Numbered from the stretch's first letter, positions 1 through 24,589 are shown. The stretch is DNA of 26,798 nt from Cyanophora paradoxa CCMP329 (GCA_004431415.1 QPMI01000381.1:1-26798); one strand, 5' to 3'. The notes: generated from the letters alone by a model not told the origin. Translations and numbers: made by a program.

Positions 1-3000
1 GGGAGCACGACGTCGTCGTCGCGCACGAGCGGCAGCAGCTCCGCCAGCCGGCCCGCGTCTCCCCGTCCAGCGCCGCTGCCCGCCCCTTGATGTACCCCGT
101 CAGCGCCACCACCGCCTCCGCCGTCAGCCGCGCCGCCGCCATCCCCGCCGCGAGCTCGCGGCAGTACATCGGCAGGGTGAGGTCCTGGGCGCCTCAGAGG
201 GGAGGGGCGGGGGAGGGGGCGGGGCGGGCCTGGACGCGGAGGCGGTCGCGGACGAAGAGGAGCGTCGCCTCCGCGCCCGGGGCCTGCAGCGCCGCCCGCA
301 GCTCTGGGTGCACGAACCGCACGGGCGCCACCGCCTGCCCCGCCACCCTCAGCCGCCCGCCGGGCGCGGCGGGCGGGCAAGGGGCGCACGGCGGCCTCGG
401 GGGGCGCCTGGAGGGCCCCCGCGGGGTCGGCGGCGGGGCCGGCGCCCGGGGCCTCGAGCGGGGGGAAGTAGAGGACGGAGGAGGGGCCGTCGCGGGGCAG
501 GAGTCGGCCCTCGTGGTCGGGGACGGCGTTGAGGGCGCGGGCGGCCTCGGGGGTGAGCCAGGGCTGGGCCTGGAGAAAGCGGTAGAGGCGGGGGAACCAC
601 GCGAGGGGCCGCCCCTCCATCCACGCCGCGTCCTGCAGCGCCTCATACACCTCCAGCGTCGTCACCGCCTGCACCCCGATCGCCACCAGCTGCGCCCGCA
701 CTTCCAGCAGCGCCCGCGCCGCCAGCGGCTGCGCGGCGTCACCGGGGCCGTCGGGGCGGGGCGGGGCGGGGCGGGGCGGGACGGACGGGGTCGGTGAGGG
801 GGGCGGGGAGGGAGCGGTCGGGGATGCCGCCGTCGGCGTCGAGGAGCTCGTAGAGCTCGGCGCTCCCCAGCCGCACCCGCCCCGGCACCTCGTACGCCCC
901 CACCGCCGTCAGCACGCACCGCTCCCCCCGCAGCGCCGCGCAGATCGCCCGCTGCGCGGCGTCGGCCGCCGCGCGCGTGCGGGGGGCGGGGGGCGGCGGG
1001 GGCGCGCCTGGACGGGCTCGAAGAAGGCGTGGTGGACGGGGAGGGGCAGGAAGGGGTAGGCGAGGTGCGCCCGCTCCTTGCCGAAGCGGGCGAGGAGCTT
1101 GAGGAAGGCCCGCACGAAGACGGGGGCGATGCAGTCGCGCAGCCACGCGTTCCACGGCCGGTCGAACACGATCGACTCGCTGCCGAGGCCCCACGTCGCC
1201 CGGCGGGGCGGGGCGGGGGCGGGGCGGGGCGGACCGGGAGGCGGGGAGGACGAAGTCGGCGTTGACGGCGAAGGGCAGGCCGCTGTTGATCTGCCCGCCC
1301 CGCCCCCTTCGCCCCCCGCCTCGCCGCGGGGCCCGGGCGGGGGCACCTTGACGGGGAGCCAGGCGAAGACGGCCCCCGGGATGCGCCGCTTCTTCCCCAG
1401 CGGGATCGCCACGCTCACTGCGCCCCGCACCGTCAGCGGGGCACCCCCCGGGGGGGCGGGGGCGGGGGCGGGCCCTTGCGGAGGACGACGCCGCGGCGCT
1501 TGTCGTCGTCGATCTCGGGGGGCACCTCCACCTCCTGCTCCCACACCCACACCATCTGCGCCCCCTCAGCCCCCGCCTCGCCCCCGCCCCCCCGCCCCCC
1601 GCACCACCCGCTCCTGCTCCTTCTCCTTCTCCGCCGCCGAGGGCGCCCCGGCGCCCCGCGGGCTCCCCGGCTCGGCGTTGGCGGCGGGGCGGGGCGGGGG
1701 CGAGGAGGCGGGCGGGGGGTCCCCCTCCTGGGGCCCCTCCCGGAGCGCTGCCTCGCGCTCCCCCTCGCCCTCCGCCTCCCGCCGCGCCGCCTCCGCCCCT
1801 CCTCCTCCCCCGCGCCCCGCCCGCCTCCCCGCGGGGCCCTCCCGCGGCGCCCGGGGCGGGGAAAGGGCGGGGGCCGGACCAGGAGGGGGCCTCTCGGCCT
1901 TCGAGGAGGGGCTGAGAGCGAGCCGGATGCCGCCTTCTCGGCGGCGCCGCTCCCCGCCGCGCCGAGCGAGGAGAAGGCGCTCGTGCGCCTCCTCGCGCGC
2001 TGGTGCGCCCCGGGGGCGGGGGAAAGGGGCGGGGGCGGGGGAGTGAGCTGGCCGGACGCGGCCCTGCGAGCATCCAAACCAGCGCACCAGCGCGCGAGGA
2101 GGCGCACGAGCGCCTTCTCCTCGCTCGGCGCGGCGGGGAGCGGCGCCGCCGAGAAGGCGGCATCCGGCTCGCTCTCAGCCCCCTCCTCGAAGGCCGAGAG
2201 GCCGAGAGAGAGCCTGGCGGTTGCGCGGGGTCAGCGGCGTGCGCGCCGAGGGGCTCTCCCCCGCTGCACGCGACCTTGCTCGGGAGGTCGCGACGCGGAG
2301 CATCTGGCGCGGGCGTCAGCTGCCTTGCCCCCGCGGAGCCGCACGCGCACCGCACCTCCTTCTCGAGTACGCGCTGGATCCAGGCGTGCCTGCGGTGGCC
2401 GGCCGGGCTTGGCGCGGGGGCGGCGTGCGGGGGGCCGGGGGGCGGACCAGTGGAAGAGGGGTACGCCCTCGCAGACGGCGGCACTATAAAGGGCCGAAAC
2501 GTCGACCTCCTACAATAGTTTGCCCATCAGTTGCAGTAGAAAAAAGCTCGAACAATAATTATACTCACCACGATGTCCTCGTCCCCCGCGGCCACCAGGC
2601 CCAGCTGCCCCCGCCCCGCCCCCCTCACCCTGCGGCCCTTCGCCCCTTCCCGCACCGCCCCCCGCCCACCTGGATCGCCCGCACGAGGAAGTGGAAGAAC
2701 TCCGTCGCGGCGTCTTGCCCGCCCGGCACTGCAGCCGCCGACGCCGCGGGGGCGCCTGCTCCCGCAGCGCCCGCCCGCGCGGCCGCCGCCTCGAGCGACG
2801 CGGCCCGGTTCGCCCGCACGAGCTCGAGGACAAGCCTGGCGGGGGAAGGAGGGGGGGGGGGGGGGGGGGGGGGTGTTTCTCGGAGGGGGCGGAGCGTCGC
2901 TGGGGAGGCGACGGCCGGGGGCGCACCGCGCCATCTGGGCCTGGCGCTCCTGCAGCTGCTCCCTGCTGAGGAGCAGGCGCTCGACCTCCTTGCGGTTTTT

Positions 3001-3755
3001 CTCCGCGTCCTCCAGCTGCCGCTTGCGCGCCGCGCCCGCCTGCCGCCGGCCGTCAGCCTCGCAGGCGCGCCGCGCCCGCGCGCCGACCTCGTATCGCGCC
3101 GCCGCCGCCGCCTCCTGAGCCTGCGCAGAGTCAGAAGTTCGGAAACAGGCGGGATTACGGAGGAGTCCCGAACAAACTTGCCTCCGTGAGAGCGTCGTGT
3201 AAGTCTGGGAGCTGGGCTCGCGTTAGCGGGGAACGAAAGAGGAGCGGGGAGGAGGCGATTACCTCCCGCTCAGCCAGTGTGCGTGCCTGTCGCGCGGGGA
3301 AGCGTCAGTACGGCGAGAGCACCAATCGACAGGTCTCCCCCAAACAAGCATAGCGGCACCTCCCTCCGCCGTAACCTCTCCGCCAGGGAAATGTTCTCAT
3401 CCACGAGCGACTCAATCTGTTTCGCGACGCGCTCTAGCGACGGAGAGCTGCGTTCTAGAACTTGCGAATCGCACCTTGTTCTGCAAGCGTTCGCAGTCTG
3501 CGCGGGATTCCTGTAATTCGATCTCTAGATTGTGCAGACGCTGCGCGAAGCGGGTCAAGCGAGCGGCGCTCCAGAGCGGTGCGGCAGCCACTGTAGCGTA
3601 GCTGTACCGTGCTTAGGAATCGGTTGGAGCCGTCGGGAGGCCAAGACGTTGCAGGCTCTGGATCGTTATCTGGATCCGCAGGCTCTGCGCTGGCAATCAG
3701 AGGGGCGAAGTGCAGGACGCTCTGCAGGCGCACGTCTGCTTTCGTCCAGCGACAT
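1..3755 (-). CDS. Multi-exon NO VEIN/sacsin-like protein with N-terminal coiled-coil region; 3' end outside the window
   Basis: ATG at 3755. Exons joined at GT/GC-AG introns read MSLDESRQPADPDND...RLHNLEIELQESRADCERLQNKIESLVDENISLAERLRRRE (coiled-coil-like) and later VSVAIPLGKKRRIPGAVFAWLPVK/INSGLPFAVNADFVLPASR/ESIVFDRPWNAWLRDCIAPVFV, which resembles the 'VFAFLP..GLxFxxxxDFxLxxSRE...WNxWL' motif recalled from NOV/sacsin-repeat proteins. Continuity across 1850-2200 is uncertain, so this could be two genes. Confidence 0.65.
1888..2203. repeat. Long inverted repeat: arms 1888-2008 and 2082-2203, 73-bp spacer
   Basis: The arms are reverse complements apart from one base in a G-run (4 vs 5 G). 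The same peptides appear on both strands in the ORF track. Confidence 0.95.
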
Positions 3756-3775
3756 CGCTGCGTCGCGGGCTGCGA

Positions 3776-3925
3776 TCAGAGCCTCTACCCCCCGCGGACG
3801 AGATCCCCCAGGCCTCCAAGGAGCGGTGCCGTCCGAAGTTACTCCGAACGTGGGAAGCGCTGCCATCCGCCGAAGAAGCGTTCGGACGAGGCGGGAAGCG
3901 CGGGACGCTCGGTGCGCAACCGACT
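3776..3925 (+). repeat. Left copy of a ~150-bp element, inverted relative to 14913-15083
   Basis: 3776-3827 is identical (52 bp) to the reverse complement of 15032-15083. Similarity continues with indels (cgtgggaagcgct..ccgccgaagaagcgttcggacgaggcgggaag..tcggtgcgc). Confidence 0.92.
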
Positions 3926-4327
3926 GTTAGAAAGTACCTGCTACAAAGCGAGCGCGTTTCACGCCCCGCGTGTGCGTCGATCGCATTGCGTACTGACACG
4001 CTCTGCGACACATTTGCAGATCGATATCGTCCTGGCTGGCCAAGGCCCGCTCCTCGGATCCTCGGATCTCGGATCCTAGGCGTCGGCGTAGCAGCCTATC
4101 TACACCGTCTGTAGTCGTTTGCTATCTCGTAAGCAGCAAAGCAGTCTCCGCCGCCTCGTTTTCTTGGAAGTGAGCTTTGGAGCCCGCAAGCACGGGCTCT
4201 CAGGCGCCTCACGGCTTGTTTGGCCTTGCGCAGCACTTGGGCACATTTGGAGGCTGCTCGAATACACCAAGCCCCTCCAAGGGCTGCGTCTGCCGGCGGA
4301 GAGCGGGGCGACGATTGAAGGGCGAGG

Positions 4328-7300
4328 ATGTCGGAGGAGCTCGCGGATGGGTCGTTCCGGCCACCGTTCAGCCCGGGAACCATGCAAGACGACGTCGTGC
4401 TCCACTCGGCACCCGGCTTCGGAGGTGCCGTCGCAGCGTTCGGCGGGGAGGGCCCCGAGTACGAGCTGCCGAGCTGGATTGACGAGCGGGTGCGGGGGGC
4501 AGGGGGGCGGGGGCGGCGGGGGCGCGGCTGACGTGCGGGGCAGGCGGGGAGCGCGGTGGTAGGGAACGGGAAGGTGGCGGTGTTGCGGGGCGACGGCGAG
4601 GCAGCGCGCCTCCTCCCGGGCTACCACCCCTCCCTCCCCATCCACAGGCCCGACGAGCTCACCGTCCACGGCCCGCCCCGCCCACCCCGTCGGCCTCGCC
4701 CCGCCTGACGCCCCGCAGACCTGCCCGAGGACCCCCGCGAGTGGGGGGCCCCCGTCCTCTTCTCCCGGTGCGGCATTAGCGCCCCTGCCGCGCGGGCGGG
4801 GCGGGGCGGCTGAGGCGGGGCGCAGCGAGGGCTTCCGGGGCGACGCGCACGCCCTGCAGGGCCTCAAAGGTGCGAGCCGCCCGCCCACGCCCCGTGTGGC
4901 GCCGCGCCTCACGGGGGAGGGCGGCAGGGGCGGGCGTGACGGACCTCCCCTCCGCATTCGACGACACCGCCGCCTCCATCGTCGTGCGCGCCCCGCCCGC
5001 CCGCCCCGCGCCCCGCCTCCCCGCACCCCCTCCCCTCCTCACCCGCCCCGCTCCCAGATCCCCACCGGGACCAAGGCGCGTCCTGGTGGGCGCCGCGCCG
5101 TGCCGGGCGGGCGCTCACGCGGCGCCGCAGGTGACCGTCTTCGAGGGCAAGGGAGGCAGCATGCGCGCCCGCACCCTCTTCCCCGGTGCGCCTCCCCGTC
5201 GCGGGCGGCGCTCGAGGCGGCGCGGCTGAGGCGGGGGCCGGCAGGGCGGTACGAGCTCGGGGAGGACCTCGGGGAGGGTGCGGGGCCGGGCGCGCTCGGC
5301 GGGGCGCGGGGCGGGGCTGAGGGGCGGCAGGGGCGCTGGACGGGGCGGTCTCGTCGGTGCTGGTGGAGGGGGACGCGCCGTGCGGGCCGGAGAGCCTGGA
5401 GGAGGCCTTCGCGCTCTACGCCGGCACCGACTTCTTCGGCACCGAGTTCCGCGGCGCCGCCTCCGGCGACCTCCCCCCGTGGATCGCCTCCGACGCCTCC
5501 TCCATCATCGTCCGCCCCCCGCCCCGCCCCGCGCCCCCGCCCCGCCCCGCCGTCCGGCTGACCTCCCCCGCCGCAGGTCGCCAACAACAAGCGCGTCATC
5601 CTGCACGCAGCGCCCGGCGCTCCCGAGGGGACCGAGTCACAGGAAGCCAAGACGCTCACGCTCCTGCCCGGGTGAGGGAGCTCGCCGGGGGCGGCGCGGG
5701 GCGGGACACCGAGGCTGCCTGGGGCAGGTTCCACCGGGCGCTGCCGCCGGAGTTCCAGGACGCGGCGGCGCGGGTCGTGGTGGAGGAGCTGCCGCCCGAC
5801 GTCACCTCCTGGGGCGTCCCCGTCCTCTGCGAGGGGTACCGCTCCCCGCACGCCCCGCGGCCCCCTTCCTCACCCCCTCCGGCCCCGCAGCGAGGGCCTC
5901 CGGGGGGCCCAGACGGCGCTGCCGAGGAGCGTGGCGCCCCTGGGGGAGGTCTTCAACCTGCCGCCGCACGCCGCGCACTCGATCTCCTCCCTCGCCGTCC
6001 CCGCCGGCTTCCAGGTGAGCCCCGCCGGTTGGGAGCCGCCGTAACGGCCGGCGGCCTCACGCGAGACCGGCCCGGCAGGTGACGCTCTTCTCGGAGAGGC
6101 GGGGCGGGGGCGAGGCGCGCACCTTCGGGCCGGGGAGCCACGAGCTGCGCGACCTCAGCGACGTGGCGCAGAGCTTCCTCGTCGAGGGTGCGCCCCGCCG
6201 CCCCCCCCCCCCCCCCCCCCCCCCCCCGCCCCCGTCCCCGTCGCCCCCTCAGCCTCCCGCAGCCCTGCGCCCGGAGCCGGAGCCGCGGGATGAAGAGCGG
6301 GAGCCGGCGGCGGAAGCGCCGCGCGGCACGGGACCGACCAGCCGCCTGTTTGCGGCCTTTCGGGCGCTCGACGGGGCCGGGGCCGGAGAGGCGGAGATGC
6401 GCGCCGCGGTGCGCGACTACCTCGACGACGCCACCGAGGAGCTGCGCGCCGCCGCCCGCTCCCTGCCGCCGCCTCCGGAGCCGGCCCCGGAGGCTCCGCC
6501 TGCGGATGAGCCGGCGACGGAGGCGGCGGGCGGTGAAGCGGGGTGGACGAGCGACGCTGTGGAGGCGCTGGTGGAGGCGTATCGCGCGGGGGCGGCGAAG
6601 GAGGAGCTCATCTCTGCCGCCTCGCGCGCCATCGTCGACTACCTCACCGCCGCCGGCGTCGCCGACCCCGACCCCGTGCGCCCCGCCGCCCGGCCCTCGC
6701 CAGCGCGGCGCTGACGAGGAGGGGGCGGCAGGGATGGCACGATGCGGAGGCGGGGCAGCTGGTGCGCTTTGTGCGGGCCGTGGCGGGCAGCCTGGACGAC
6801 AAGGGCCTCGCCACCGTCGCCCGCCTCTTCATCGCCGAGACCGTCCACGTCGACGCCGCCGGCGACGCCGCCCCAGCCGACCCCCCGCCCCCTGTTGACC
6901 CCGCACCGGCGAGCGACGATACTGAAGCTGAGCAAGACGACGCCGACCACGGCTTCTCCGACGCTGCTGCGAGCACGGGCGAAGCCGGACCCGCCGCGGA
7001 TCTGCTTGCGACCTTCCGCGCGGTTGCGGAGGGGAGGGCGTCGGAGGACGATTTCCGTGCGACAGCGAAGGCGTTCCTCGACAAGACCGTCGGGCCGCTT
7101 CAGTCGGTGCGTGGGTGTACATGTCGTGCGCTGCCACGCGAATTCCCGTCAGTGACTGTACCGCAGGGCTCGCGGGAGTCCCCATCAACGGAACTGACAG
7201 CGGAGTCGGACTCGGGGGCACCATCGGAGTCGTCGGCGGTGTCGGAATCGGCCCTGGATGACCTGCTCGCGAAGTTCCGGGCGCTGGACGCGGACGGGGC

Positions 7301-10300
7301 GAGCGCGGAGGCGTTCCACGCCGCAGCGGAGTCGTTCATTCAAAGCGTCACGTCTCGCTTGCAACGGGCGGCTGCGCACAACGATGACAGCAGCAAGGAC
7401 ACGGCTGTCGAGGGCGACCAAGAAGCGACCATCCAAGATTCTTCCTCTTCCAGCGCGGACGAAGCCGGACCCGCCGCGGATCTGCTTGCGACCTTCCGCG
7501 CGGTTGCGGAGGGGAGGGCGTCGGAGGACGATTTCCGTGCGACAGCGAAGGCGTTCCTCGACAAGACCGTCGGGCCGCTTCAGTCGGTGCGTGGGTGTAC
7601 ATGTCGTGCGCTGCCACGCGAATTCCCGTCAGTGACTGTGCCGCAGGGCTCGCGGGAGTCCCCGTCAACGGAATTGACAGCGGAGTCGGACTCGGGGTCA
7701 CCATCGGAGTCGTCGGCGGTGTCGGAATCGGCCCTGGATGACCTGCTCGCGAAGTTCCGGGCGCTGGACGCGGACGGGGCGAGCGCGGAGGCGTTCCACG
7801 CCGCAGCGGAGTCGTTCATTCAAAGCGTCACGTCTCGCTTGCAACGGGCGGCTGCGCACAACGATGACAGCAGCAAGGACACGGATGTCGAGGGCGACCA
7901 AGAAGCGACCATCCAAGATTCTTCCTCTTCCAGCGCGGACGAAGCCGGACCCGCCGCGGATCTGCTTGCGACCTTCCGCGCGGTTGCGGAGGGGAGGGCG
8001 TCGGAGGACGATTTCCGTGCGACAGCGAAGGCGTTCCTCGACAAGACCGTCGGGCCGCTTCAGTCGGTGCGTGGGTGTACATGTCGTGCGCTGCCATGCG
8101 AATTCCCGTCAGTGACTGTGCCGCAGGGCTCGCGGGAGTCCCCGTCAACGGAACTGACAGCGGAGTCGGACTCGGGGTCACCATCGGAGTCGTCGGCGGT
8201 GTCGGAATCGGCCCTGGATGACCTGCTCGCGAAGTTCCGGGCGCTGGACGCGGACGGGGCGAGCGCGGAGGCGTTCCACGCCGCAGCGGAGTCGTTCATT
8301 CAAAGCGTCACGTCTCGCTTGCAACGGGCGGCTGCGCACAACGATGACAGCAGCAAGGACACGGCTGTCGAGGGCGACCAAGAAGCGACCATCCAAGATT
8401 CTTCCTCTTCCAGCGCGGACGAAGCCGGACCCGCCGCGGATCTGCTTGCGACCTTCCGCGCGGTTGCGGAGGGGAGGGCGTCGGAGGACGATTTCCGTGC
8501 GACAGCGAAGGCGTTCCTCGACAAGACCGTCGGGCCGCTTCAGTCGGTGCGTGGGTGTCGTGCGCTGCCATGCGAATCCCCGTCAGTGACTGTGCCGCAG
8601 GGTTCGCGGGAGTCCCCGTCAACGGAACTGACAGCGGAGTCGGACTCGGGGGCACCATCGGAGTCGTCGGCGGTGTCGGAATCGGCCCTGGATGACCTGC
8701 TCGCGAAGTTCCGGGCGCTGGACGCGGACGGGGCGAGCGCGGAGGCGTTCCACGCCGCAGCGGAGTCGTTCATTCAAAGCGTCACGTCTCGCTTGCAACG
8801 GGCGGCTGCGCACAACGATGACAGCAGCAAGGACACGGATGTCGAGGGCGACCAAGAAGCGACCATCCAAGATTCTTCCTCTTCCAGCGCGGACGAAGCC
8901 GGACCCGCCGCGGATCTGCTTGCGACCTTCCGCGCGGTTGCGGAGGGGAGGGCGTCGGAGGACGATTTCCGTGCGACAGCGAAGGCGTTCCTCGACAAGA
9001 CCGTCGGGCCGCTTCAGTCGGTGCGTGGGTGTACATGTCGTGCGCTGCCACGCGAATTCCCGTCAGTGACTGTACCGCAGGGCTCGCGGGAGTCCCCATC
9101 AACGGAACTGACAGCGGAGTCGGACTCGGGGGCACCATCGGAGTCGTCGGCGGTGTCGGAGTCGGCCCTGGATGACCTGCTCGCGAAGTTCCGGGCGCTG
9201 GACGCGGACGGGGCGAGCGCGGAGGCGTTCCACGCCGCAGCGGAGTCGTTCGTTGCCTTGATTGCCTGGAGGCTGATGCACGCGTCGGCTGCGGCTGCCA
9301 ATCTCGCCGACAAGACAGAAACTAAGCACACCGTCTCACAATCTGCAGAGGACGAGGTTTGCGTGAGCAGTGTTACGATCTTGTGCGTTGGCCGCCCGCT
9401 GATGCGCCGGCATTGCAGATTTCGGAGGCGAGCGCACTAGTGGAGGAAGCGGAAAAAAAGGCGGAGGCGCTGAACGAAGCGGCGAACGAGGCGGCGCTTC
9501 TCGAGCGCGAAGCCGACGAGCTTGCAGAGCGCGCTGCCGAGGCGGAGACGGCAGAAGAGCAGCAGGAGCTCGCGGCGGCTGCCGAGCGAGCGGCGGAGGC
9601 GGCGGAGGAGAAGGCGGATGAGGCGCGGGATCTGGCGGAGGTCGTGGAGAGCCTGTCAGAAAAGGTGGAGAGCCTGGCGGAGGCGATTGGCGAGATGGAG
9701 CAGGCGGCAGGGAGCTCAGAGCTCGCCGAACTCGCAGAAACGGCCAGCACTCTGCAGGAGGAGGCTGCCGAAGAGCAGAGGCGCGCGGAGGAGAGCGCGA
9801 GGGATGCCGCCGACGCCTCGGAGCAGTCCGAGCAGCCACAGGAGGGTACCGACTCGAGCAGCGAAGAGCCCTATGATGGCGAGGACGTCGAGACGTCAGG
9901 CGAGAACGTTGAGACGTCAGGCGCAGACGAGGCCACCGGCGATGCGGAGGAGGCAATAGCTAAGGGCGACGTGAGTAGCACAAGCGACGCCACGGGCGAT
10001 GCGAGCAGCACTGGCGAGGACACCGAGGCTACTGGAGACGCCGAGAACGACTCCGCTGACCACCATCCCCCCTCGGAAGAAAACACGACAGCCTCCGATC
10101 TGCTTGCGACCTTCCGCGCGGTTGCGGAGGGGAGGGCGTCGGAGGACGATTTCCGTGCGACGGCGAAGGCGTTCCTCGACAAGACCGTCGGGCCGCTTCA
10201 GTCGGTGCGTGGGTGTCGTGCGCTGCCATGCGAATTCCCGTCAGTGACTGTGCCGCAGGGCTCGCGGGAGTCCCCGTCAACGGAACTGACAGCGGAGTCG

Positions 10301-11932
10301 GACTCGGGGGCACCATCGGAGTCGTCGGCGGTGTCGGAATCGGCCCTGGATGACCTGCTCGCGAAGTTCCGGGCGCTGGACGCGGACGGGGCGAGCGCGG
10401 AGGCGTTCCACGCCGCAGCGGAGTCGTTCATTCAAAGCGTCACGTCTCGCTTGCAACGGGCGGCTGCGCACAACGATGACAGCAGCAAGGACACGGATGT
10501 CGAGGGCGACCAAGAAGCGACCATCCAAGATTCTTCCTCTTCCAGCGCGGGCGACAGCCCAAGCGACGCCAGCGGCGATGCCGAGAGCTCTGGCGAAGCA
10601 CCGGGCGAAGCAGAGAGCTCCGGCGACGCCAGCGGCGATGCCGAGAACTCTGGCGAAGCACCGGGCGAAGCAGAGAGCTCCGGCGACGCCAGCGGCGATG
10701 CCGAGAGCTCTGGCGAAGCACCGGGCGAAGCAGAGAGCTCCGGCGACGCCAGCGGCGATGCCGAGAGCTCTGGCGAAGCACCGGGCGAAGCAGAGAGCTC
10801 CGGCGACGCCAGCGGCGATGCCGAGAGCTCTGGCGAAGCACCGGGCGAAGCAGAGAGCTCCGGCGACGCCAGCGGCGATGCCGAGAGCTCTGGCGAAACA
10901 CCGGGCGAAGCAGAGAGCTCCGGCGACGCCAGCGGCGATGCCGAGAGCTCTGGCGAAGCACCGGGCGAAGCAGAGAGCTCCGGCGACGCCAGCGGCGATG
11001 CCGAGAGCTCTGGCGAAGCTTCGGGCGAAGCAGAGAGCTCCGGCGACGCCAGCGGCGATGCCGAGAGCTCTGGCGAAGCTTCGGGCGAAGCAGAGAGCTC
11101 CGGCGACGCCAGCGGCGATGCCGAGAGCTCTGGCGAAACACCGGGCGAAGCAGAGAGCTCCGGCGACGCCAGCGGCGATGCCGAGAGCTCTGGCGAAGCA
11201 CCGGGCGAAGCAGAGAGCTCCGGCGACGCCAGCGGCGATGCCGAGAGCTCTGGCGAAGCACCGGGCGAAGCAGAGAGCTCCGGCGACGCCAGCGGCGATG
11301 CCGAGAGCTCTGGCGACGCTGCGGGCGATGCGTCCAGCACGAGTGCGAGCAGAGGCTTGGATCCGGCAGTGGCGGAGGCGAAAGCAGCAGCAGACCTGGA
11401 AGCGCTGGCGGCGATCTGCGCGTTGCGGGGGAAGGCGGCGGGGGAGGGGGACGAGTCGTTCGTGGGGAGCCTCACCAAGGTCCTCGTCTCGGACAAGCTC
11501 GTCGCCGCCGGCTTCGTGCGCCCGCCCGCCCCGCACCCGCCCCCGCACCGCGCCGCCCGCGCCCGCGCCCCGTCCCGCCTCTGACGCGGGGCGGGGCAGT
11601 CGGTGCCGGAGGCGCTGCCGGTGCTCGAGGGGAGCGCGGGGGCGCTGCGGGAGCGGATCCTGGGGAGCATGTGCGAGATGGAGGCGGCGCGCCTGGAGGA
11701 GAACGGGCCCGTCCTCGACGAGTTCGAGGGGGCCCTCGCCGGCCTCTACGCCCTCGCCCTCCGCGCCGGCACCGAGCCCGACGCCGAGCCCGAAGCCGCC
11801 TCCGAGACCGCCTCGGAGCTCGACGGCGGCGAGGCGGCGGCCTTCGTCGAGGAGCCCGACGCGAGCGGCCTCGAGGCCGAGGCCGCCGAGGCCCCCGACG
11901 GCCCCGACCCCTTCGACATGCCCCTCTGCTAG
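4328..11932 (+). CDS. Giant multi-exon protein: four beta/gamma-crystallin-like domains, tandem acidic helical repeats, Gly/Asp/Ser/Glu-rich repeat and a C-terminal helical domain
   Basis: Spliced 4328-6187 gives Greek-key-like units, e.g. PVLFSREGFRG..DLPSAFDDTAASIVIPTGTKVTVFEG..LFPGRYEL..LDGAVSSVLVE; ALYAGTDFFG..ASDASSIIVANNKRVILH; AHSISSLAVPAGFQVTLFSE..GEARTFGPGSHELRDLSDVAQSFLVE. Introns 9357-9418 and 11516-11599 join the long ORFs. Stop TAG at 11930-11932. The start codon is uncertain. Confidence 0.8.
6981..9251 (+). repeat. 480-bp coding tandem repeat, about 4.7 copies (units start 6981, 7461, 7941, 8421 [474 bp], 8895 [partial])
   Basis: Near-identical units are visible directly. Each encodes two related helical motifs and carries a probable 60- or 54-bp intron. 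Confidence 0.97.
10097..10550 (+). repeat. Detached sixth copy of the 480-bp unit
   Basis: gatctgcttgcgacc...tccagcgcgg matches the array and has the 6-bp-shorter intron variant of unit 4. Confidence 0.95.
10563..11330 (+). repeat. 60-bp coding minisatellite, about 12.7 copies, encoding GDASGDAESSGEAPGEAESS
   Basis: Successive 60-base lines are near-identical. The unit consists of two related 30-bp halves. Confidence 0.97.
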
Positions 11933-12306
11933 CAGCCCCCGCGCCCCGCTGCCCGCGACCCTTTTCTCGCCCCCGCCCCCTCGCGAGGTCTACCTTCACA
12001 GCAGTAATTCCGACTCTCACCTCAGGGCCTCTACTTAAGTAACTACTTTTTTTGAACGTAGACGTGGCTGCTACGAACGCAAACGACATTCACTGCAGAG
12101 ATAGCTCTGCACATGGTCGTGGCTGTGCGCGGCCATGGGACTATCTTTGTCCGGGCGTCCCCTAAAGCACGCGGATCGGTGTCCCGGACGGCTCGTTGCA
12201 GGAGCGCTAGCAGCGGGCATATCGCTCGCGTCGCGTTCTCGCATGCGTTGCCAGGCCAAAAAAAGCGGAGCCGGGGTACATAGGAGAAAAGGGGGGAGGA
12301 AGAAAG

Positions 12307-14793
12307 CTACGCCCAGGGGAGGGGGAGGAGGGCGTCGGCGCAGGCGTCAAGGCCGTGCTCCGCGCCGGCGATGTCGGCCTCGGGGCCCTCCCCGAACTCG
12401 ATCTCGACGACCGCCTCCGCCTCCGCCTCCGCCTCGCCGGCCCCGCCGCCGGCCGGCCCCAGCGCCGCCTGCACCGCTTCCTGCGCCCCCGCCCCGTCCG
12501 CCAGCGCCGGGCGGCCGCGCGCGCCCCGGGCAAGCGCGCACGGCGTCGGCGATGGCGTGCTGGGCGGCGGCGGCGACCTCGTCGCGGGAGAGGCCGCGCG
12601 CGCAGGCCTCGAGCTCCTGGGGGGCAGTGAGGCGGGGCGGCGCGGGCTGCGGGGCGGCGGGCGGGGCGGACGCGGAGCTGCTCGAGGAGGGCGGCGAGCT
12701 GCTGGCCGCTCCAGGGGTCCACCTCGGCCCCCCCGCCCGCCAGCGCCCGCACCGCCTCGTACTTGCGCAGCTGCTCCACCCGCCCCGCCAGCTCCCCCAC
12801 CCGCCCCTCCGTCACCTCCTCCTCCCCCAAACTGCACACAGCCGCCCTCGCCCCCGCCCCGCTCGCCCCCGCCTCCGCCTCCTCGGACGCTGCCGCCTCC
12901 TCCGAGCCGGGGCCGGGGCCGGGGTGCGGGGAGAGGGAGGCGGGCCCGGAGGCTTCCGAGGATGCGGGCCCCGAGGGCTCGGCGGAGGCGGGCCCGGCGG
13001 GGTCGGAGGGGGCGGGGTCGGGGCGGGCGTCGAGGAAGGCGCGGTGCCAGCTCGCCGCGAGCGCCTCCTCCAGCGCCCCCAGCATCGCCGTACCCTCCGC
13101 GCTCTCCGGGGCCCCCCGCAGCCCGCACATCGCCCCCAGGAGGCTGTCCCGCAGGGGCGCGCCGGCGAGGGTCCCGGGGTCGAGGTCCCTGGCGCCCCCG
13201 CCGGCGCCGTAGTAGCGGGCGTCGAGCAGGACGCCTGCGGGCGGGTCACGCAGGGGCGGGTGAGGCGGAGGGGCCGGGGCGCGCACCGAGGGCGAGGCCC
13301 AGCGAGGCCGCCTCCTCGCCGGCCCCCGCACCGGCCCCCGCAGCCCGCACAGCGCCTCCTCCAGCCGCCCGCTCAGCTCCGCCGCCCTCGCCGCCTTCCC
13401 CTCCTCCCCTCCGCCTCCGCCCCCGCCCCGCCTCCTCGCCCCGCTGCCCGCCTCCTCGCCCCCGCCGCCCGACGCCGGAGACTCGTCGCTCGATGCCGGC
13501 GCCTCGGCGTCTCCGCGGGACGCCTCCGGCGCTTCCTCGCCCGATGCTGCCGCCTCGTCGCCGGCGCCCGGCGCCCCCTCTCCGGGCTGGCGGGGGCCGG
13601 CGGGGCGCTGCGGAGGGCGCGGAGCGGGGCGGTGGCGTCGTCGAGGAAGGCGCGGGCGGCGGCGCGGAGCTCGGCCTCGCCGCCCCCGCCCCGTCCAGCA
13701 GCCGGAACGCCGCCAGCAGCTCCGACGCCTCCGCAGCCTCGCCCCCCGCCGCCCCCTGCGCCCCCTCCGCACCGTCAGCGGCGCCGGGGCGGGGCCGGGG
13801 GCGGGGGCGGGGCGGGGGCGCACGGAGAGGGGGGCGGTGACGGCGGAGAGGAAGGCGCGCGCCTCCGCCTCGAACGTCGCCTCGCCCTCGCCCCCCGGCC
13901 CCACCCCTCGGAACGCCGCCAGCAGCCGCCCCTCCCTGTCCAGCCCCCGCTCTGCTGCAGCCTCACCCGACGGCTCGGCCGGCGGCTCGGTCGGCGGCTC
14001 TGCCGGTGGCTCGGCCGGTGGCTCGGTCGGCGGCTCTGCCGCTGGCTCGGCCGGTGGCTCTGCCGGTGGCTCGGCCGGTGGCTCTGCCGGTGGCTCGGCC
14101 GGTGGCTCGGCCGGTGGCTCGGCCGGTGGCTCGGCCGGTGGCTCGGCCGGTGGCTCGGCCGGTGGCTCTGACGGTGGCTCGGCCGGTGGCTCTGACGGCG
14201 GCTCGGGCGGGGTCTCGGGCGGGGCGTCGGGGGCGGGGAGGGGGCGGGAGAGACGGTGCGCGAGGGGCGCGGTGGCGTGGTCGAGGAAGGCGGCGGAGGC
14301 GTCGCGGAAGGCCGCCTGGCTCGCCTCGTCTTCCGTCAACGCTCGGAAGCGCTCCAGCAGCGCCTCCAGCCCGCCCGCGCCCCCGGCCCCCTCCTCCCCG
14401 TCCTCCCGGGCCCCGCCCTCGAGCTGCCGCTCCCCGTCGGGGCCGCCCCTCGCGCTCGCCCCGGCGGCCTCGCTGAGGGCCGCCGTGCCGCAGAGCTCCT
14501 CCTGCACGAGGGCGGCGATGACGGGGGCGGCGGCCGCGCGGTACGCGGCCTCGTCCTCCACACCGCCCGCCTTCAGCTCACCCCACTTCTCCAGCAGCTC
14601 CTCCGTCGCCTCGCCCCGCCTCCGCTCGACCTGCATGCGCCGCCTCGTGACCCGCCGCCACGCCGGCCCCGCGCGACACTCGAACCTCATTCCGTACGGA
14701 TGCTTCCAAGTATGATCGGCTCTGCTCCCGGAGGCCGGACGTGTCGCCCGAGAGAAAGAGCCTAAGCAGGCCTTCGAGCTCGGCGTCCGCCAT
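12307..14793 (-). CDS. Multi-exon acidic helical-repeat protein, diverged paralog of the repeat/C-terminal part of 4328-11932
   Basis: ATG at 14793 (MADAELEGLLRLFLSGD...). Motifs LLERFRAL..FRDASAAFLDHATAPL, LLAAFRGV..FEAEARAFLSAVTAPL and LLAAFRLL..LRAAARAFLDDATAPL; LRDSLLGAMCGL matches LRERILGSMCEM in the partner. Stop at 12307-12309. Apparent 1-bp frameshifts lie in G/C runs near 13590-13690. Confidence 0.72.
13965..14204 (-). repeat. 12-bp coding minisatellite, 20 units, encoding (EPPA/S/T)n
   Basis: Tandem ggtggctcggcc-type units, in frame within the minus-strand gene. Confidence 0.95.
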
Positions 14794-14912
14794 GGCGCCC
14801 GATTTCGGTCCGGTTGCTCTCTGCAATAACAGCAACGCCACGGAGTCAAATGCGTGTGCGGCGCATCTCGCCGAGTGAACAACACTCTAAGAGCTGGCTG
14901 TGTTGCGCGGTC

Positions 14913-15083
14913 TGGCCGGTCGCGCACCGACGGTCCTGCACTTCCCGCCGCCTCGTCTGAACGCTTCTTCGGCGGCTGAGAGCGCCTCCCACGTCTCGTC
15001 GGAGTGTGCTAGCTGCGCGGTCTCGGACGGTACCGCTCCTTGGAGGCCTGGGGGATCTCGTCCGCGGGGGGTAGAGGCTCTGA
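14913..15083 (-). repeat. Right copy of the ~150-170-bp element
   Basis: Reverse complement aligns with 3776-3925. It lies ~120 bp upstream of ATG 14793. Confidence 0.92.
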
Positions 15084-15279
15084 GCCTCAAACCGCGTGTA
15101 CTAGTAGTCCGCAGCGCCGGCGCCGGCGCAGCAATCGATGTCACATGTGCCCGCGGGCCGGCGCGGCTCCCCTGATTGGGCCAGCTATAGCGTCGTTGCG
15201 GCCGAGCGCCCTTGCACATGCAAGTCGCAGCTTAAAGCTTGCCGCGCGCGCAGGCCGGCCTGGGCCGGGCGGCGCCGCC

Positions 15280-15412
15280 GCGCCCCAGCTCGAGCTCACG
15301 TGAATTCTTACTGAGCTACTAGTAGCCTACTACTACTGAGCTTACTGAATTCGTAAATTGTCTTGATCTCGAGATCAAATCCTGCCTGTGCACGTGATTG
15401 TGCACGTGACCT
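15280..15412. other. Palindrome-dense intergenic patch with three CACGTG boxes
   Basis: agctcgagct at 15287, gctactagtagc, ttgatctcgagatcaa at 15363-15378; CACGTG at 15297, 15391 and 15403. Confidence 0.6.
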
Positions 15413-15926
15413 GACATCGCCGCCTTGCGCAGGCTCCCCCCCGCGGGCACCTTCCGCCCGCGGGGGGCCGTCGCCTCCCGATCCACCGGTGCTGCAATCT
15501 TCGGCACTTCACCTAGGTGCCGGGGAGGGCGCACTCCCTCCCTCAAGCTTTAAGGGGGCCTTTCCGTGCTCGGCCGACCGAAGCCGCTCCGGCGGTGGAT
15601 GGCGGGCTGGGCGCCCCTCGTGGTCCAACCCCACGAACTGGAGCCCCAAAGTTGAGATCCGTCTAGCTTGTAGACGTTCTGTCTGCAGCCTGCATGTTTC
15701 TCGAAATGCAAGTCCAAGCTTAAGTCCCGATATCGGTTGCAAGTCGACGTCCAGGAAGCCTGGCTACCCTAGTGCGCAAGAACGATCGGTTGCCGAAAGT
15801 TCATGGAGCCTGCACTTGTGCATACAAGGAGGAGGGAGAAGCAGGGCGGAAATCGGGCCGGGGAGGCGCTGGCCGCAGGCGCCGGCGCCGGCGCGGGCGC
15901 GAGGCGGCGGGTCGGGGCGGGGCGGG

Positions 15927-17471
15927 TCAGAAGTGGAGGTCCTTGACGGCGTTGAACATGACTGGGTGGAGCTTGTAGAAGAGAAGAACGAAGGCGGTGG
16001 TGCCGACGTACTGAATGGCTACTTAGAAGGCGGTGGGAGAGACGGCGGACGGGGCGCGCGAACCGCGGGGCGCAGGAACTCCTTGAGGACGAGGCGGTTG
16101 CGGCCCTCGAGGATGGCCTGGAAGGGGAGCACCGAGGTCCGCGCCGCCACCTCCTCGAACGCCTCCCCGAAGCGCTCCCGCAGCCGCTTGTCCCCGTGCC
16201 ACACCGCGAAGATGTGGTGCGCCATCAGCCCGAACGACGTCACCAGCGTGAACGACGACCCGATCCACAGGCTGTGCGCCAGGCACCAGATCCTGCCCGC
16301 CCCGCCCCGCGTCGGCGCGGCGGCGGCGGGGCGAGGGGGCGGGGGGCGGGGCGGCGGGGCGGGGGTGCGGGGGTGGGCGGACCCCTGGCCGACCATCTGG
16401 GGGTGGCGGGTGATGCGGATGATGCCCTCCTCGTAGAGCCGCACCTGCGGCTTGTTGATCGCCGCCACCTCCGCCAGGTTCTGCCCCGCGTCGGCCCCGC
16501 GCGGCGCTGCGGCGGGGCGGGGCGGGGCGGGGCGGACGAAGGTGGCGGGGTAGAGGAAGATGAAGGAGAGGGCGGAGAGGAAGCAGACGAACTCGCGCAT
16601 GCCGGGGATGCCCTGCAGCTGCCAGAGCTGGACCCCGTCGTAGCGGTGCACCAGGAAGTACGTGATCAGCGCCCCCGCCATCGGGAGGCTGAACAACGCG
16701 AACAGGACCCGGTACGCTGCCCCCGCGTCAAGCCGGCGCGGCGCCGGCGCGTGGCGCGGAGGGGAGGGGAGGGGGGGAGGGGGGGGGGGGGGGGGGGGGG
16801 CACCGCGGGCGCCCATCCAGGCCTCGCCGCGGGGCCGGAGGGCGGCGAGGCCGCTGTGGCCCGTGGCGAAGGCGAGGTTCAGCGCCAGCATCCGCACCTG
16901 CCCCGCTTCTTGTCAGTCCCCGCCGCGCCCGCATCGCCCCGGCGGCGTACGTGGCTATCCTGCAAGAATGCCGAGCCTGCAAGCGCGCCCTCAACGGTCC
17001 CGCCGTACCGCACCCCGGCCGCGGCGTAGCGCACCCTGCTCTCCAGCCGCAGAGATGAGCAGCGCACCGCCGAGAAGAACCGACGGGACAGCCAGTGTCG
17101 CGTTCTTCGCCCAGCTTGGGATCGGCTCCTTCACCTGCGAGCCGACGATTCGTGGGCGATAGTCGCGGGCGCTCCCTCGGAGCGTGCAGGCTCACCGCCT
17201 TCTCAACCTCCTCGATCGTCCGCTCGCGCTTCGGCGTCGTCGGTTGCTTCGCCTTGCACAGCCACTGCGGGTCCGCGTGCCGCCGACCGGCCACACGCGT
17301 GCAAGGCCGGTCCATGCTCACGTCGAAGGAACGTTTAGAGATGGGGAACAAGGCGAGCGGCCTCCTGAGCGCCCGCGCTCCGTGCTGACTCTGCGTGCAC
17401 GCTGCGCTCGCCGCCGCCGCGCCTGGCCGAGATCCTACTCCTTCCCATGCAGCCGCGGCAGCAACGAACAT
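15927..17471 (-). CDS. Z-ISO: 15-cis-zeta-carotene isomerase (NnrU family), plastid-targeted, multi-exon
   Basis: Recognised motifs: FATGHSGLAALR, AYRVLFALFSLP, HRYDGVQLW, FLYPATFNLAEVAAINKP, GIIRITRHPQMVGQ, IWCLAHSLWIG, HHIFAVWHGDKRL, TSVLPFQAILEGR. Last exon YVGTTAF..LHPVMFNAVKDLHF* (stop 15927-15929). N-terminal Ala/Ser/Arg-rich presequence. Confidence 0.93.
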
Positions 17472-17582
17472 TTCTGAGGGTCTGCCTGAAGCGCCGCAAG
17501 CGATCTTTCGACGTGTTCAGGTGCGAACGAAGCGATCTTTCGTGCTAGGTGCGAACGAAGATCGCTGGAGTCGCCCGGTACC
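17472..17582. promoter_or_regulatory. Compact bidirectional promoter between Z-ISO and TBC1D19 with repeated motifs
   Basis: Head-to-head ATGs ~110 bp apart. AAGCGATCTTTCG at 17498 and 17530, AGGTGCGAACGAAG twice, inverted AAGATCGCT at 17558. Confidence 0.6.
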
Positions 17583-19992
17583 ATGGCAGCCGTCCGCTAG
17601 GCCGTAGGGCCGTACGACCTCTATAGATGAGCGACGCCGTCCGCACCCGCTACCCGGCCAACGCGACCCAGGAGGACCGCGAGCGGATCCTGGCAGCCGA
17701 GTTAAAGTCGCACCTCCTCTACTGGAGCGCTCGCAGAGCCGTGAAGGCGAGCCGCTCGGGCGCGTAACACGCCCTGCAGACCCAGGCGTGCGCAGGATGA
17801 GCTCCTCAAGCCGAAGTACAGGCTCGGCGACGTGTCCGATGCGTTGCGTACGATCGAGGAGCTCGGCCTCGGCGTGCAGCTGCGGAACCTCGTCTCTGCG
17901 CTAGACGACGACGCGCGCCGCATGCAGGAGTGCGCGGACGCGCCGCCCCCGTCCTGCGCGGGCCCGACGCCCAGCGCAGGCGGCACGCGGCGTTGGACTG
18001 GCCGCTGCCGTTGTCGCGGGAGCGTTCGGAGGAGCCGATCGAGGCGGTGGAGCGCGTGCGGCTGCGCTGGGAGCAGCGCATGCGCGACGAGCTCGCCGCC
18101 ATCTCCGCCGAGATGGGACAGCCGCTTCTGCCGGCGCGTCCCCGCCCCCCGCTGCGCTTCCCCCGCTGATCACGACGGGAGCAGCCGGGGCCCGAGGAAC
18201 CGCCACCAGACGCGAGCGGGGGCAGCGGGGACGAGGCGGCGGGGGAGGGGAGGGGCGGGGCGGGGAAGGAGGGGTCGGGGGCGGGGCGCGGGGGCGGGAC
18301 GGGACGGGGCGGGGCGGGGGAGCCGTCGCGGGCGGTGTACGACGAGAACGACCTCTTCAACGCCCTCACCGCCGTCCAGAGCCCCAACGCCGCCAGGCCC
18401 CCGCCCCGCCCCGCCCCGCCACGCTGCCCCGCCCCAGCGCCCCGCTGAGGCGGCGCAGCGCTGCGACGCGGCCCCTCGCCTGGGGCCTCATCCGCATCGC
18501 CCTGCGCACGCCGACGCTCGAGGAGCTGCGCGCCCAGGCGCGTCGCCGCCCCGGCCGCCGGGGGCGGGGCGGGGGGCTGAGGGCGGGGGCAGCTGCCGGA
18601 GCTAGCGCCGGAGTACCGGCAGGTCGGCCTCGACGACGAGCTCAAGCGTGCGCCCGCCGCGCCTTGTGCGTTTCACGGGCCGGGGCGGCCGGGGCGAGGC
18701 GGGGGGCGCAGCGTGGTTCGCGGAGGAGCGGTACCGCCTCGGCCAGCGCGTCGTCGCCGCCGGCTACGGCCCCGTCTGCCGTCAGGCGCCCCGCCCCGCC
18801 CCGCCCGCCCCGCCGCTCGCCGCTCGCCGCCGAGGCGGGGGCCCCGCAGTTCCTGAAGAAGGGGGCCCCCGCGGCGCTGCGGCCGGCCCTCTGGGCGCGC
18901 GTCCTCGCCCTCGACCTCCCCGCTGCCGTGCGCCCCGCCTGGCCTCCCGGCGGCAGGGGCCCCGGGCGAGGGGGCCGGTGGGGCGGAGCAGGAGGCGGAG
19001 TTCGCGGTGCTTGGGCGGGGGGCGCGCCGCGGGACGCCCTCGAGGCCCTCGCCCTCGCCGACGCCCGCGTGCGCCCCCGCCGAGCCCCGGGGCGCCGGCG
19101 GCGGGGGCAGGGGCGACGGGGGGCGTAGGAGGCGTCGTGCGACGAGAGCTGCTTCGTCTTCGAGGAGGCCCTCGCCGCCGTCGTCCGCCCGCCCCCGCGC
19201 CCCGCCCCGCCCCGCCCCGCTGAGCGCCCCCAGGTCACCGCCTTCGTCCGCGACCCCGCCCTCCTCGCCAGCTGCGCCCAGCCGCCCCACGCCCCCGTCC
19301 TCGCCCCGCTCCCCGACGGTGCCCGCCCCGCCGGCCTCGCCGGGGCCTGGGTTGAGGGGGCGGGAGGGGGGCGGGGGCGGGTGCCGCGGGGCGGGGTGGT
19401 GCCGTTCAAGGGGCTGGCGAGGCTGGCGCAGCCGCTCTGCTTCCTCTTCGCCGAGCCGGCGCACGTCTACGCCGCCTTCCGCGCCCTCTACGCCCGGTGC
19501 CCCCCGCCCCGCCCCGCCCCCCACCGCGGCCGCCCGAGGCGAGGCGGGGCGGGGTGGGGCAGGTACTTCTGCCGCCTGCACGGGGTGAGCTCGCGCGGGG
19601 AGAGCCTGCTGCGGCTGTGCCGGGCCTTCGAGGAGCTGCTGCAGGAGGCGGAGCCCGGGCTGTGGCAGCACCTGCTGGGCGTGGGGGCGGCGCCGCTGCG
19701 GGCGGCCTTCCCCTGGCTGATGTACGCCTTCGCCGGCTTCCTCGAGGCCGAGCAGCTGCTGCTCCTCTGGGACCGCTGCCTGGCCTTCGACTCGCTGCTG
19801 CCCGTCGCGGCCCTCGCGGCCGCCCTCTTCGCCTTCCGCGCGGGGCCGCTCGGCCGGGCGGGCTCCTGGGAGGAGGTCCAGGAGCTCCTCGCCGACTTCT
19901 CCCGCATCAAGCCCGTGCCCCTCCTCCAGCACTTCCTCTTCCCCCGCCCCCGCCCCCCGCGCCCCGCCCCCGCCACCCGCCCCGACCCCTGA
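17583..19992 (+). CDS. TBC1D19: TBC1 domain family member 19-like Rab-GAP, multi-exon
   Basis: EPIEAVERVRLRWEQR, GLIRIAL, QVGLDD, GAPAALRPALWARVL, FVFEE, GVVPFKG..PLCFLFAEP, YFCRLH, PLRAAFPWLMYAFAGFLEAEQLLLLWDR..LAAALFAFRA, PLLQHFLF follow the order recalled for TBC1D19. Start is ATG 17583 (with intron) or 17627. Confidence 0.88.
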
Positions 19993-20210
19993 CCCCGCCC
20001 CCCACCCGCCCCGCCCCGCCCCGTGCCCCCAACCGCCCCTCCACCGCCTCCGGCGGCCTCCGCCACGGCCTCCACGCCCGCCGCCGCCCCGAGACAAGAA
20101 CACAGACGACGCTCGTTCGGATTCGAAGGGACAGGGACGAGGGCTAGGACGGGGTTGGACGCGCGGGGCCTCATGAGAGGTCGAGGGGCAGGGGATCGGC
20201 GGGCGGGGTG

Positions 20211-21868: not shown

Positions 21869-22266
21869 GGGCGGGCGCCTTGGTTACAAAGCCCGCGCTG
21901 TCATTTGATGCTGGGCAGACGCTTGCTTACTGCTTGGCTACTTCTGGCTGATGCGAACGAAGCGTTGCATACTGGTTGGTCGTGTCTGAAATGCATACTG
22001 GCCTTAGCTAGCACTGCTTTGCAGTGCGTCCTCGCGGCCGTAGCTGTGTTTCCTTCATACTGACACACGAACGGTATCTACTTGTGTATCCGCGCGCGCG
22101 AGCATCGCCCCCGGTCCAAGTTTGGCACAGGCGGCGCGCGGGCGCTCGCCGCCAGATTCCTTCAAAGCGCCGCACCTAAGCTTCCTTCACAGCAACTCTT
22201 CGTGCACCTGGCGGCGCGCAGGCGCCCACCCGCCAACAGCTGCAGCCGCAGCTCATCAGGACAAGG

Positions 22267-23379: not shown

Positions 23380-23829
23380 CCGCGCCCCGCCGCGCACGAG
23401 GCACGCAGAGCCGGCACGGGGCCCGAGAGGGGGGCGACGGGGCGCGCCTCGCGGGCCTCCCGAGGGCCCCTCCGAGAGGAGCGGGGCGAGGAGCGCGGCC
23501 GCAGCCTCCGCCCCCGCCCCGCCTGCAGCGCCGCCCAGCCGGCGCGACTGCGGCTTGCGGAGACCGCTCGCTGGGCTCCCGGCCGCCCCGTCGCCGCTCG
23601 AGGTGCCGCTGCGCGTCGCCCCCGCGAGGGCCCCTGCAGCCGCCCAGCCGGGGCGCTTGGCGCGGCTCGGGGCGGGGCCTGCTGAAGACATCGGCGGGGG
23701 CAGCCCGCGCGCTCCTTTCCTCTCTGCCCCGCTCCCTGCAACGACCAAGGCCCCTCGAGCGCTCAAGTTTTCCACGACGCCGCACGCTTAAGCCCGACGC
23801 CGTCACGGAGTCAGCCGGAGCGTTATGAT

Positions 23830-24330: not shown

Positions 24331-24589
24331 CAAAAAGGCTTCGTGCCTGCCGCATCATGGCATCCGCAGGCCGGCGCCGAGTCCTGCGAGGCTCAGAGCC
24401 CTCCGGATCCCTCCCAGCTGCAGGGCCCGGGCCGGGCCTCATTTCCCTCTAAAATTTCCCTCTTCCCAATTAACTGCGAAGTTGCAGTGCAATGTCGGGT
24501 CGCGGAATGGTTTAATTGGTGCTCATGATCTTCGAGGGGCCGCCGTGGCACGGGGTCGGGGCTCGGGGCCGGGTCGCGATCGACTGCGA

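Follow-up and report, generated by a model that had tools for sequence, protein, structure and literature searches.

A stretch of 26,798 nucleotides from the glaucophyte Cyanophora paradoxa CCMP329 (GCA_004431415.1, QPMI01000381.1:1-26798), referred to here in its full length as the window, carries two neighboring convergent genes, the plus gene and the minus gene, named after their strands. The two genes are paralogous at both the DNA and the protein level, as measured against shuffled controls, and the repeat that they have in common, a short module with a helix-loop-helix outline, is real. Both genes are transcribed and spliced in RNA contigs from two studies. The pair apparently represents a species-restricted, expressed orphan family with a new helix-loop-helix module. 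We give roughly even chances to the proposal that this restricted pair arose by inverted duplication and encodes polyanionic, disordered proteins whose hairpins bind each other or a common partner, which would make the two products scaffolds defined by their valency.

The repeated module and the paralogy of the two genes

The module is approximately 36-40 residues long and is composed of a helix (LLxxFRAL), a variable Gly/Ala/Asp/Glu loop of 8-10 residues and a second helix (FxxAAxxFLxxxTxxL). In ten diverged copies, only the hydrophobic positions and one Arg, kept in most copies, are conserved, while the loop varies. A pattern scan across all six frames of the window locates 13 strict copies in the plus gene (at 6346, at ten sites between 7002 and 9177, and at 10100 and 10355), in line with the approximately 13 counted in an earlier note on this DNA, and two on the minus strand, at 14360 and 13925. 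No strict copy occurs outside the two genes in the 26.8 kb scanned. A third minus-strand copy (13601-13722) is interrupted by a 1-nt gap in the assembly, which brings the minus gene to the at least three copies of the earlier count. Two degenerate copies are present in each gene, at 6562-6675 and 6753-6878 in the plus gene and at 14686-14775 and 14478-14603 in the minus gene. A profile built from the five plus module types only scores the minus protein at 56.8 bits, with three significant domains, against a maximum of 10.6 bits in 2000 composition-matched shuffles. The similarity of the two products, which the earlier note had named as a check on its proposal, is thus significant.

The count of 13 reflects recent amplification and not 13 independently conserved sites, as 12 of the 13 copies lie in units of a young, 98%-identical repeat of 480 bp. 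Ten are found within the tandem DNA repeat at 6972-9251 and two more in a displaced sixth unit at 10070-10549. This leaves only about five diverged module types, and the truly diverged plus copies are m1 (6340-6465), A, B and the two degenerate copies. Within each unit, an A module is followed by a stop-free phase-0 intron (60 or 54 nt) and a Ser/Glu spacer, and then a B module by a further spacer. The unit introns (7107-7166, 7587-7646, 8067-8126, 8547-8600 and 9021-9080) are absent from the annotated protein. As they are multiples of three, a 6-nt indel apart, and free of stops, their retention would leave the reading frame intact. Units differ from one another by three substitutions and the 6-nt indel in 60 intron bases versus seven substitutions in approximately 420 exon bases. 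The intron therefore has roughly threefold the density of variable sites seen in the exons, with small numbers on both sides.

Single-sequence AlphaFold2 (AF2) modeling of a B-spacer-A stretch returns two helix-loop-helix hairpins with a predicted local distance difference test score (pLDDT) of 70-77, separated by spacers below 50. A prediction of a complex between an A module and a B module reached a median of 0.32 against a mark of 0.34, which is neither support nor contrary evidence for binding.

The paralogy of the genes is clearest between module m1 of the plus gene and module m4 of the minus gene, with 75% DNA identity over 100 nt and 73% protein identity over 37 residues (E 1e-11). The m3-intron-m4 segment of the minus gene is collinear with the A-intron-B unit of the plus gene. 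In both genes, it is only the A-type copy that has a phase-0 intron behind it, so the two-module unit with its intron is older than the duplication. In the plus gene this intron (7107-7166, 60 nt, GT..AG) directly follows the module and is removed in the annotated protein. Its counterpart in the minus gene (13756-13823, 68 nt, phase 0) also directly follows a module, and it is predicted because its ends are GT..AG, because a single open frame requires it and because the listed RNA contigs all stop at 13755. The earlier claim of a phase-0 intron behind the motif in both genes holds with this distinction.

A Cys-containing domain, likewise said earlier to be shared, aligns between the two proteins with a local score of 92 versus 38 +/- 6.6 (maximum 65) in 2000 shuffles, and BLASTP gives 35% identity over 66 residues (E 6e-5). 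The intron positions of this domain differ between the genes. Each Cys domain resembles an internal duplicate of a unit of approximately 50 residues (p 0.0005-0.005). Less firm is a third element, a DPxW unit thought to be shared in a different order: the order does differ, but the similarity is weak. Four of 2000 shuffles reach the score of the minus-gene W unit against plus 6540-6675 (p ~0.002), BLASTP gives E 0.26, and the best partner is the degenerate "GW.." module just upstream of the DPxW site, not the adjacent DPGW. The suggestion that the Cys motifs and the W unit are further diverged copies of the hairpin is unsupported, since the module profile detects neither.

The two genes also share their 5′ leader. 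Positions 3776-3836 match 15023-15083 (61 nt, 98%) and 3848-3894 match 14948-14994 (47 nt, 89%), both in inverted orientation, and the similarity runs up to the same GTGCGC splice donor in both genes. RNA contigs join the minus leader exon to position 14820 across a 107-nt GT..AG intron. As the right arm serves as exon 1 in transcripts of the minus gene, where it is spliced to the ATG-bearing exon, the apparent "long inverted repeats" are shared 5′ leader exons. A transposon-like cassette with terminal inverted repeats was considered and is rejected, given that the right arm is a spliced exon 1 and that the similarity reaches the shared donor; the bases directly flanking both arms, read by eye in the alignment, contain no direct repeat. 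At 98% over 61 nt, the leader exon by far exceeds the coding regions of the paralogs in conservation, pointing to a shared regulatory element or to gene conversion. Folding of the two leader exons offers no covariation to judge by, there being two sequences only. In a 2012 run (X13), a 52-nt leader unitig (15032-15083) has a depth of 72 versus approximately 23 for its neighbors; the type of this run is not on record and none of its contigs carries a splice joint. Such a depth is slightly above two copies' worth, and a third genomic copy of the leader is possible.

Gene models, transcripts and predicted proteins

The plus gene runs from an ATG at 4329 to a stop at 11932. Its product of 2092 residues is the EukProt protein tig00001629_g9518 (t2) of Cyanophora paradoxa, which was matched in the profile search and fits the plus-strand exons; isoform t1 is two residues longer. 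The annotated protein agrees with our plus model, in which the unit introns are removed. The features of the plus gene are as follows.

3776..3920, plus strand: probable 5′ leader exon, ending in a GTGCGC donor, the left arm of the "inverted repeat"; taken as an exon from its counterpart in the minus gene
4329..6190, plus strand: start of the coding sequence, with four probable beta/gamma-crystallin-like domains in many small exons (residues 1-395); the annotated protein matches the exons
6340-6465, plus strand: module m1, a strict copy
6562-6675, plus strand: degenerate "GW.." module, a diverged copy, followed by intron 6676-6731
6753-6878, plus strand: degenerate module after DPDPGW, a diverged copy
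6972..9251, plus strand: 480-bp tandem array of 4.8 units (Tandem Repeats Finder, TRF, 98% matches, score 4406)
9419..10069, plus strand: very acidic, helical or coiled-coil-like stretch (judged from sequence only) with an Asp/Glu/Ser/Thr spacer, after intron 9357-9418 of the annotated model; D+E 33%, net charge -41 over 159 residues
10070..10549, plus strand: displaced sixth A-intron-B unit, intron 10205-10258
10563..11328, plus strand: 60-bp array of 12.8 units (TRF 98% matches), a Ser/Gly/Asp/Glu/Ala spacer free of basic residues; net charge -76 over 256 residues
11348..11932, plus strand: Cys-motif domain in two halves, each with a "C.LRG/C.ME"-type helix, then an acidic tail and the stop; intron 11516-11599

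The 84-nt GT..AG joint of intron 11516-11599 is present in RNA contigs of runs X1, X3 and X6. At 9252-9418, the last tandem unit ends abruptly within the second helix of the B module. The annotated model uses the GTTTGC donor at 9357, and an alternative GTTGCC donor at 9252 is equally frame-keeping; the two-residue difference between t1 and t2 sits at this junction.

The minus gene is modeled as a protein of 732 residues, and its features are given below.

14928..15083, minus strand: 5′ leader exon, the right arm of the "inverted repeat", followed by intron 14821-14927; RNA contigs cover 14928-15040
12307..14793, minus strand: coding sequence, ATG at 14793 and stop at 12309-12307, with introns 14631-14685, 13756-13823 (predicted), 13235-13286, 12617-12671 and 12481-12541, four of the five being joints in RNA contigs
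13601..14775, minus strand: five modules, at 14686-14775 with 14478-14603 (degenerate), 14241-14366, 13824-13931 and 13601-13722
13965-14240, minus strand: (PAEP)n spacer, a 12-bp array of 21 units
13017..13382, minus strand: Cys-motif domain, split by intron 13235-13286
12436..12749, minus strand: W unit (DPW..., a module-like helical pair) with introns 12617-12671 and 12481-12541, then an acidic tail

Three runs, belonging to two studies, contain spliced contigs, which therefore derive from RNA. Their joints on the minus strand fall at 14821-14927, 14631-14685, 13235-13286, 12617-12671 and 12481-12541, all with GT..AG ends once the cuts are shifted. As assembled, the minus frame is broken. 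RNA contigs from the two studies carry an extra C, G and C behind 13334, 13583 and 13682, respectively, each within a C or G homopolymer. With these three bases and the predicted intron, a single frame of 732 codons is obtained. The frameshifts are best read as assembly errors, as the RNA contigs carry the extra bases; most likely, the reference assembly undercalls the homopolymers at these three positions and thereby breaks the frame. Three such errors fit the manner in which the genome was assembled, with PacBio RSII reads corrected by Illumina reads and uncovered areas left as raw PacBio sequence (PMC6704402). A library of 1.84 billion proteins contains no protein matching the minus gene, although the annotated plus protein is present, probably because of the broken frame in the assembly.

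Single RNA contigs run unbroken from the last exon of the plus gene across the 375-nt gap into the last exons of the minus gene (11330-12479), with introns of both strands removed. This indicates that the convergent 3′ ends or untranslated regions (UTRs) abut or overlap. In the published C. paradoxa genome, introns average 86 bp, genes lie densely packed end to end and their UTRs often overlap (PMC6704402).

Both products are extremely acidic, with a net charge of -313 for the plus protein and -85 for the minus protein, an isoelectric point of approximately 4 and some arrays without any basic residue. The acidic spacers that had been reported between the motifs are borne out by these values. 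Lys and Arg together make up 6.3% and 7.0% of the plus and minus proteins, and the VPV motif occurs once and not at all, respectively. Both products are probably mostly disordered, with short predicted hairpins placed between low-confidence acidic spacers. The Cys domain of the plus protein is modeled by AF2 entirely as helices, at a pLDDT of 48. At neither N-terminus is an obvious plastid transit peptide or signal peptide seen when the sequence is read by eye.

Residues 1-395 of the plus protein form four repeats of approximately 95 residues. When a profile of the four repeats is compared with the PDB, 11 of 12 matches are beta/gamma-crystallins (Protein S, spherulin 3a, Ciona beta/gamma-crystallin and beta-crystallins) at E 0.001-0.5, and the ESM Atlas features of this N-terminus place it with Crystall/Inhibitor_I36 clusters at 0.90. 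The Pfam Crystall model is not reached by the N-terminus, which in Pfam matches only Syncollin (E 0.0075). Judged by these profile matches, the plus protein probably carries four beta/gamma-crystallin-like domains at its N-terminus. The minus protein has no crystallin-like domains.

The window as a whole has 65-85% G+C, and its introns are short with GT..AG ends. The amplified part of the plus gene (7000-11000) lies at 66-68% G+C versus 74-83% for the minus gene (12000-14500), despite their paralogy. Ten long open reading frames (ORFs) outside the pair (1-4000 and 15000-26798) have no Pfam match at E 0.001; in DNA this rich in G+C most long ORFs are not genes, and the pair's real neighbors are built from small exons. 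An Rfam scan of the window matches no family. In a literature search, tig00001629 was not named in any paper and matches for "crystallin" with Cyanophora were unrelated. An exact look-up of the plus protein on contigs returned no record.

Relatives and competing explanations

The module profile of 42 columns was run over the 1.84 billion representative proteins, which do not cover unannotated paralogs in this genome, and matched only the plus protein itself (E 9e-202), plus a bacterial repeat protein (E 5e-5). The latter is rejected as a chance match, as it covers only ten profile residues, five times over. In Pfam, exon-wise pieces and parts of the plus protein yield only sub-threshold matches to DUF6540, PRIMA1, Rop and Syncollin; the minus gene was searched exon by exon. 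A PDB sequence search with the module profile finds nothing below E 0.2, an ESM Atlas search with the Cys domain gives no usable match, and two metagenome scans with two parts of the plus protein reveal no relatives. Word searches with the Cys/W region of the minus protein and with the plus N-terminus also return no matches, which are weak blanks given candidate lists saturated at 8000. The earlier note recognized no named family, and the searches of Pfam, the PDB, the ESM Atlas and the protein library support the same conclusion for the module and the Cys domain.

The following course of events is proposed. An inverted duplication would have produced a pair whose members still have in common the leader exon, the Cys-motif domain at the C-terminus and two kinds of module, the A type with its phase-0 intron and the m1/B type. 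The plus gene would later have gained or kept the four crystallin-like domains and the acidic coiled-coil-like stretch, and would have amplified the A-intron-B unit to six copies. The conserved hydrophobic face and the Arg may be too little for a fold that is stable alone. As the hairpin is so small and has one conserved face, it probably packs on another hairpin or on a common partner. The plus protein could then act as a scaffold with a valency of approximately 15, and the minus protein, with a valency of about five, could compete with it or co-assemble. The shared leader would place both scaffolds under common control. The huge negative charge suggests that assembly would need cations or basic partners, and the crystallin-type domains would be the obvious site for a dependence on cations. 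Microbial relatives of these domains bind Ca2+. A binding role of the hairpin, effects of valency and dependence on cations are what we infer from this architecture, and the scaffold or co-assembly reading is plausible. A bolder version is doubtful, namely that the hairpin is a new self- or hetero-associating "sticker" with which the 15- and 5-valent paralogs build a Ca2+-tuned gel, condensate or cortical lattice found in glaucophytes only.

A number of observations weigh against the scaffold proposal. The AF2 confidence is low (mean pLDDT 59 for the B-spacer-A stretch and 48 for the Cys domain), and Foldseek matches the B-A model to nothing but generic helical bundles (E above 2). Simple self-condensation is hard to reconcile with a net charge of -313, and an array whose units are still 98% identical may not have existed long enough for selection on valency to show in it. 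The minus model depends on one predicted intron and three corrected bases. That the family is missing from other glaucophytes is concluded from transcriptomes and from a 42-column profile, which is too short to register proteins with only one or two diverged modules.

The conserved face of the module can also be read without any mutual binding. The hairpins, or the second amphipathic helix alone, could recruit another protein in the manner of AKAP-type helices or LD motifs, so that both products would be docking scaffolds for an outside partner. The small size of this face, its inclusion of the Arg kept in most copies and the retention of the module by both paralogs despite otherwise rapid divergence are all compatible with docking; however, no known docking motif reached significance in the Pfam and PDB sequence searches, and we regard docking as rather unlikely, though not negligible. 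The charge of the proteins invites a different explanation, in which the acidic arrays and the crystallin-type domains bind Ca2+ or other cations and the module is a mere structural spacer. Protein S and spherulin 3a, which the N-terminal domains resemble, are Ca2+-binding stress or dormancy proteins, and net charges of -313 and -85, with some arrays lacking any basic residue, would suit a polyanionic buffer or stress protein. This nevertheless leaves unexplained why the hydrophobic face of the module is what is best conserved in both paralogs. Furthermore, the minus protein has no crystallin domains and the module loops have no conserved ligand pattern, which makes a buffer an unlikely account of the pair.

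It could also be argued that the locus is a fast-evolving orphan with little or no function, whose repeat count stems from replication slippage or unequal crossing-over and whose minus copy may be decaying. The lack of relatives, the very young arrays, the three frameshifts of the minus gene as assembled and its missing library protein would all follow. Yet the RNA restores a 732-codon frame across five introns, which is unlikely in a decaying gene, and the module signal survives between paralogs that can otherwise barely be aligned. With a leader exon more conserved than the coding regions and consensus ends kept by all introns, loss of function is decidedly unlikely. Even more improbable, to the point of being nearly dismissed, is that a known helix-loop-helix family, be it EF-hand-like, Rop-like or RIIa-like, includes the module as a degenerate member masked by biased composition. 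The outline of helix, Asp/Gly-rich loop and helix, the "LDADG" or "LDGAG" of some copies and the sub-threshold Rop match (E 0.11-0.13) point that way. Against this, no EF-hand, RIIa or other model appears in Pfam at E up to 1, the PDB gives no such match and the fold search is empty. Up to E 10, no EF-hand protein is among the PDB matches of the module profile, and an EF-hand is rejected on the loop itself, which has 8-10 residues with no conserved column in ten copies versus a loop of 12 residues with conserved Asp/Asn/Gly/Glu ligand positions.

Should the scaffold role of the hairpins prove true, the glaucophytes, a lineage whose molecular cell biology has hardly been explored, would have supplied a new two-helix binding module of simple design together with two natural scaffolds, one of high and one of low valency. 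Whatever the function, the minus gene, apparently lost to three homopolymer errors, is recoverable from RNA, and an "inverted-repeat cassette" is explained as two genes with a conserved leader exon. The plus gene is also a clean example of an exon-intron-exon unit that was amplified in tandem while keeping a stop-free, multiple-of-three intron.

Comparison with known systems

The hairpin of two helices of approximately 20 residues each is reminiscent of Rop (PF01815). The Rop hairpin dimerizes into a four-helix bundle, and the module might act by a similar dimerization. Membership of the Rop family is rejected, as the match reaches only 12.6-12.8 bits versus a cut-off of 25 and provides no evidence of homology.

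Epiplastins, the articulin/alveolin-class proteins of the cortical skeleton of Cyanophora, are a second likeness, being repetitive, low-complexity proteins of the same organism. A cortical structure was also one of the assemblies that the earlier note suggested for the pair. They are defined by Glu/Lys-rich acid-base dyad domains with VPV motifs (PMC6212826). The two proteins do not belong to this class, with Lys and Arg at only 6-7% and VPV found once in the plus protein and never in the minus protein.

The microbial beta/gamma-crystallins, represented by Protein S of Myxococcus and spherulin 3a of Physarum, are matched by the profile of the N-terminal repeats of the plus protein. The Cyanophora domains differ from these in being fused to an acidic repeat region of 1700 residues.

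The remaining comparison is with sticker-and-spacer linker proteins such as EPYC1 of the Chlamydomonas pyrenoid, to which the two Cyanophora proteins are unrelated in sequence. The latter are extremely acidic rather than basic, and their module is a two-helix hairpin rather than a single helix. The likeness would instead be one of design, with repeated short modules that are predicted to be helical, low-complexity spacers that are probably disordered, and expansion by tandem duplication.

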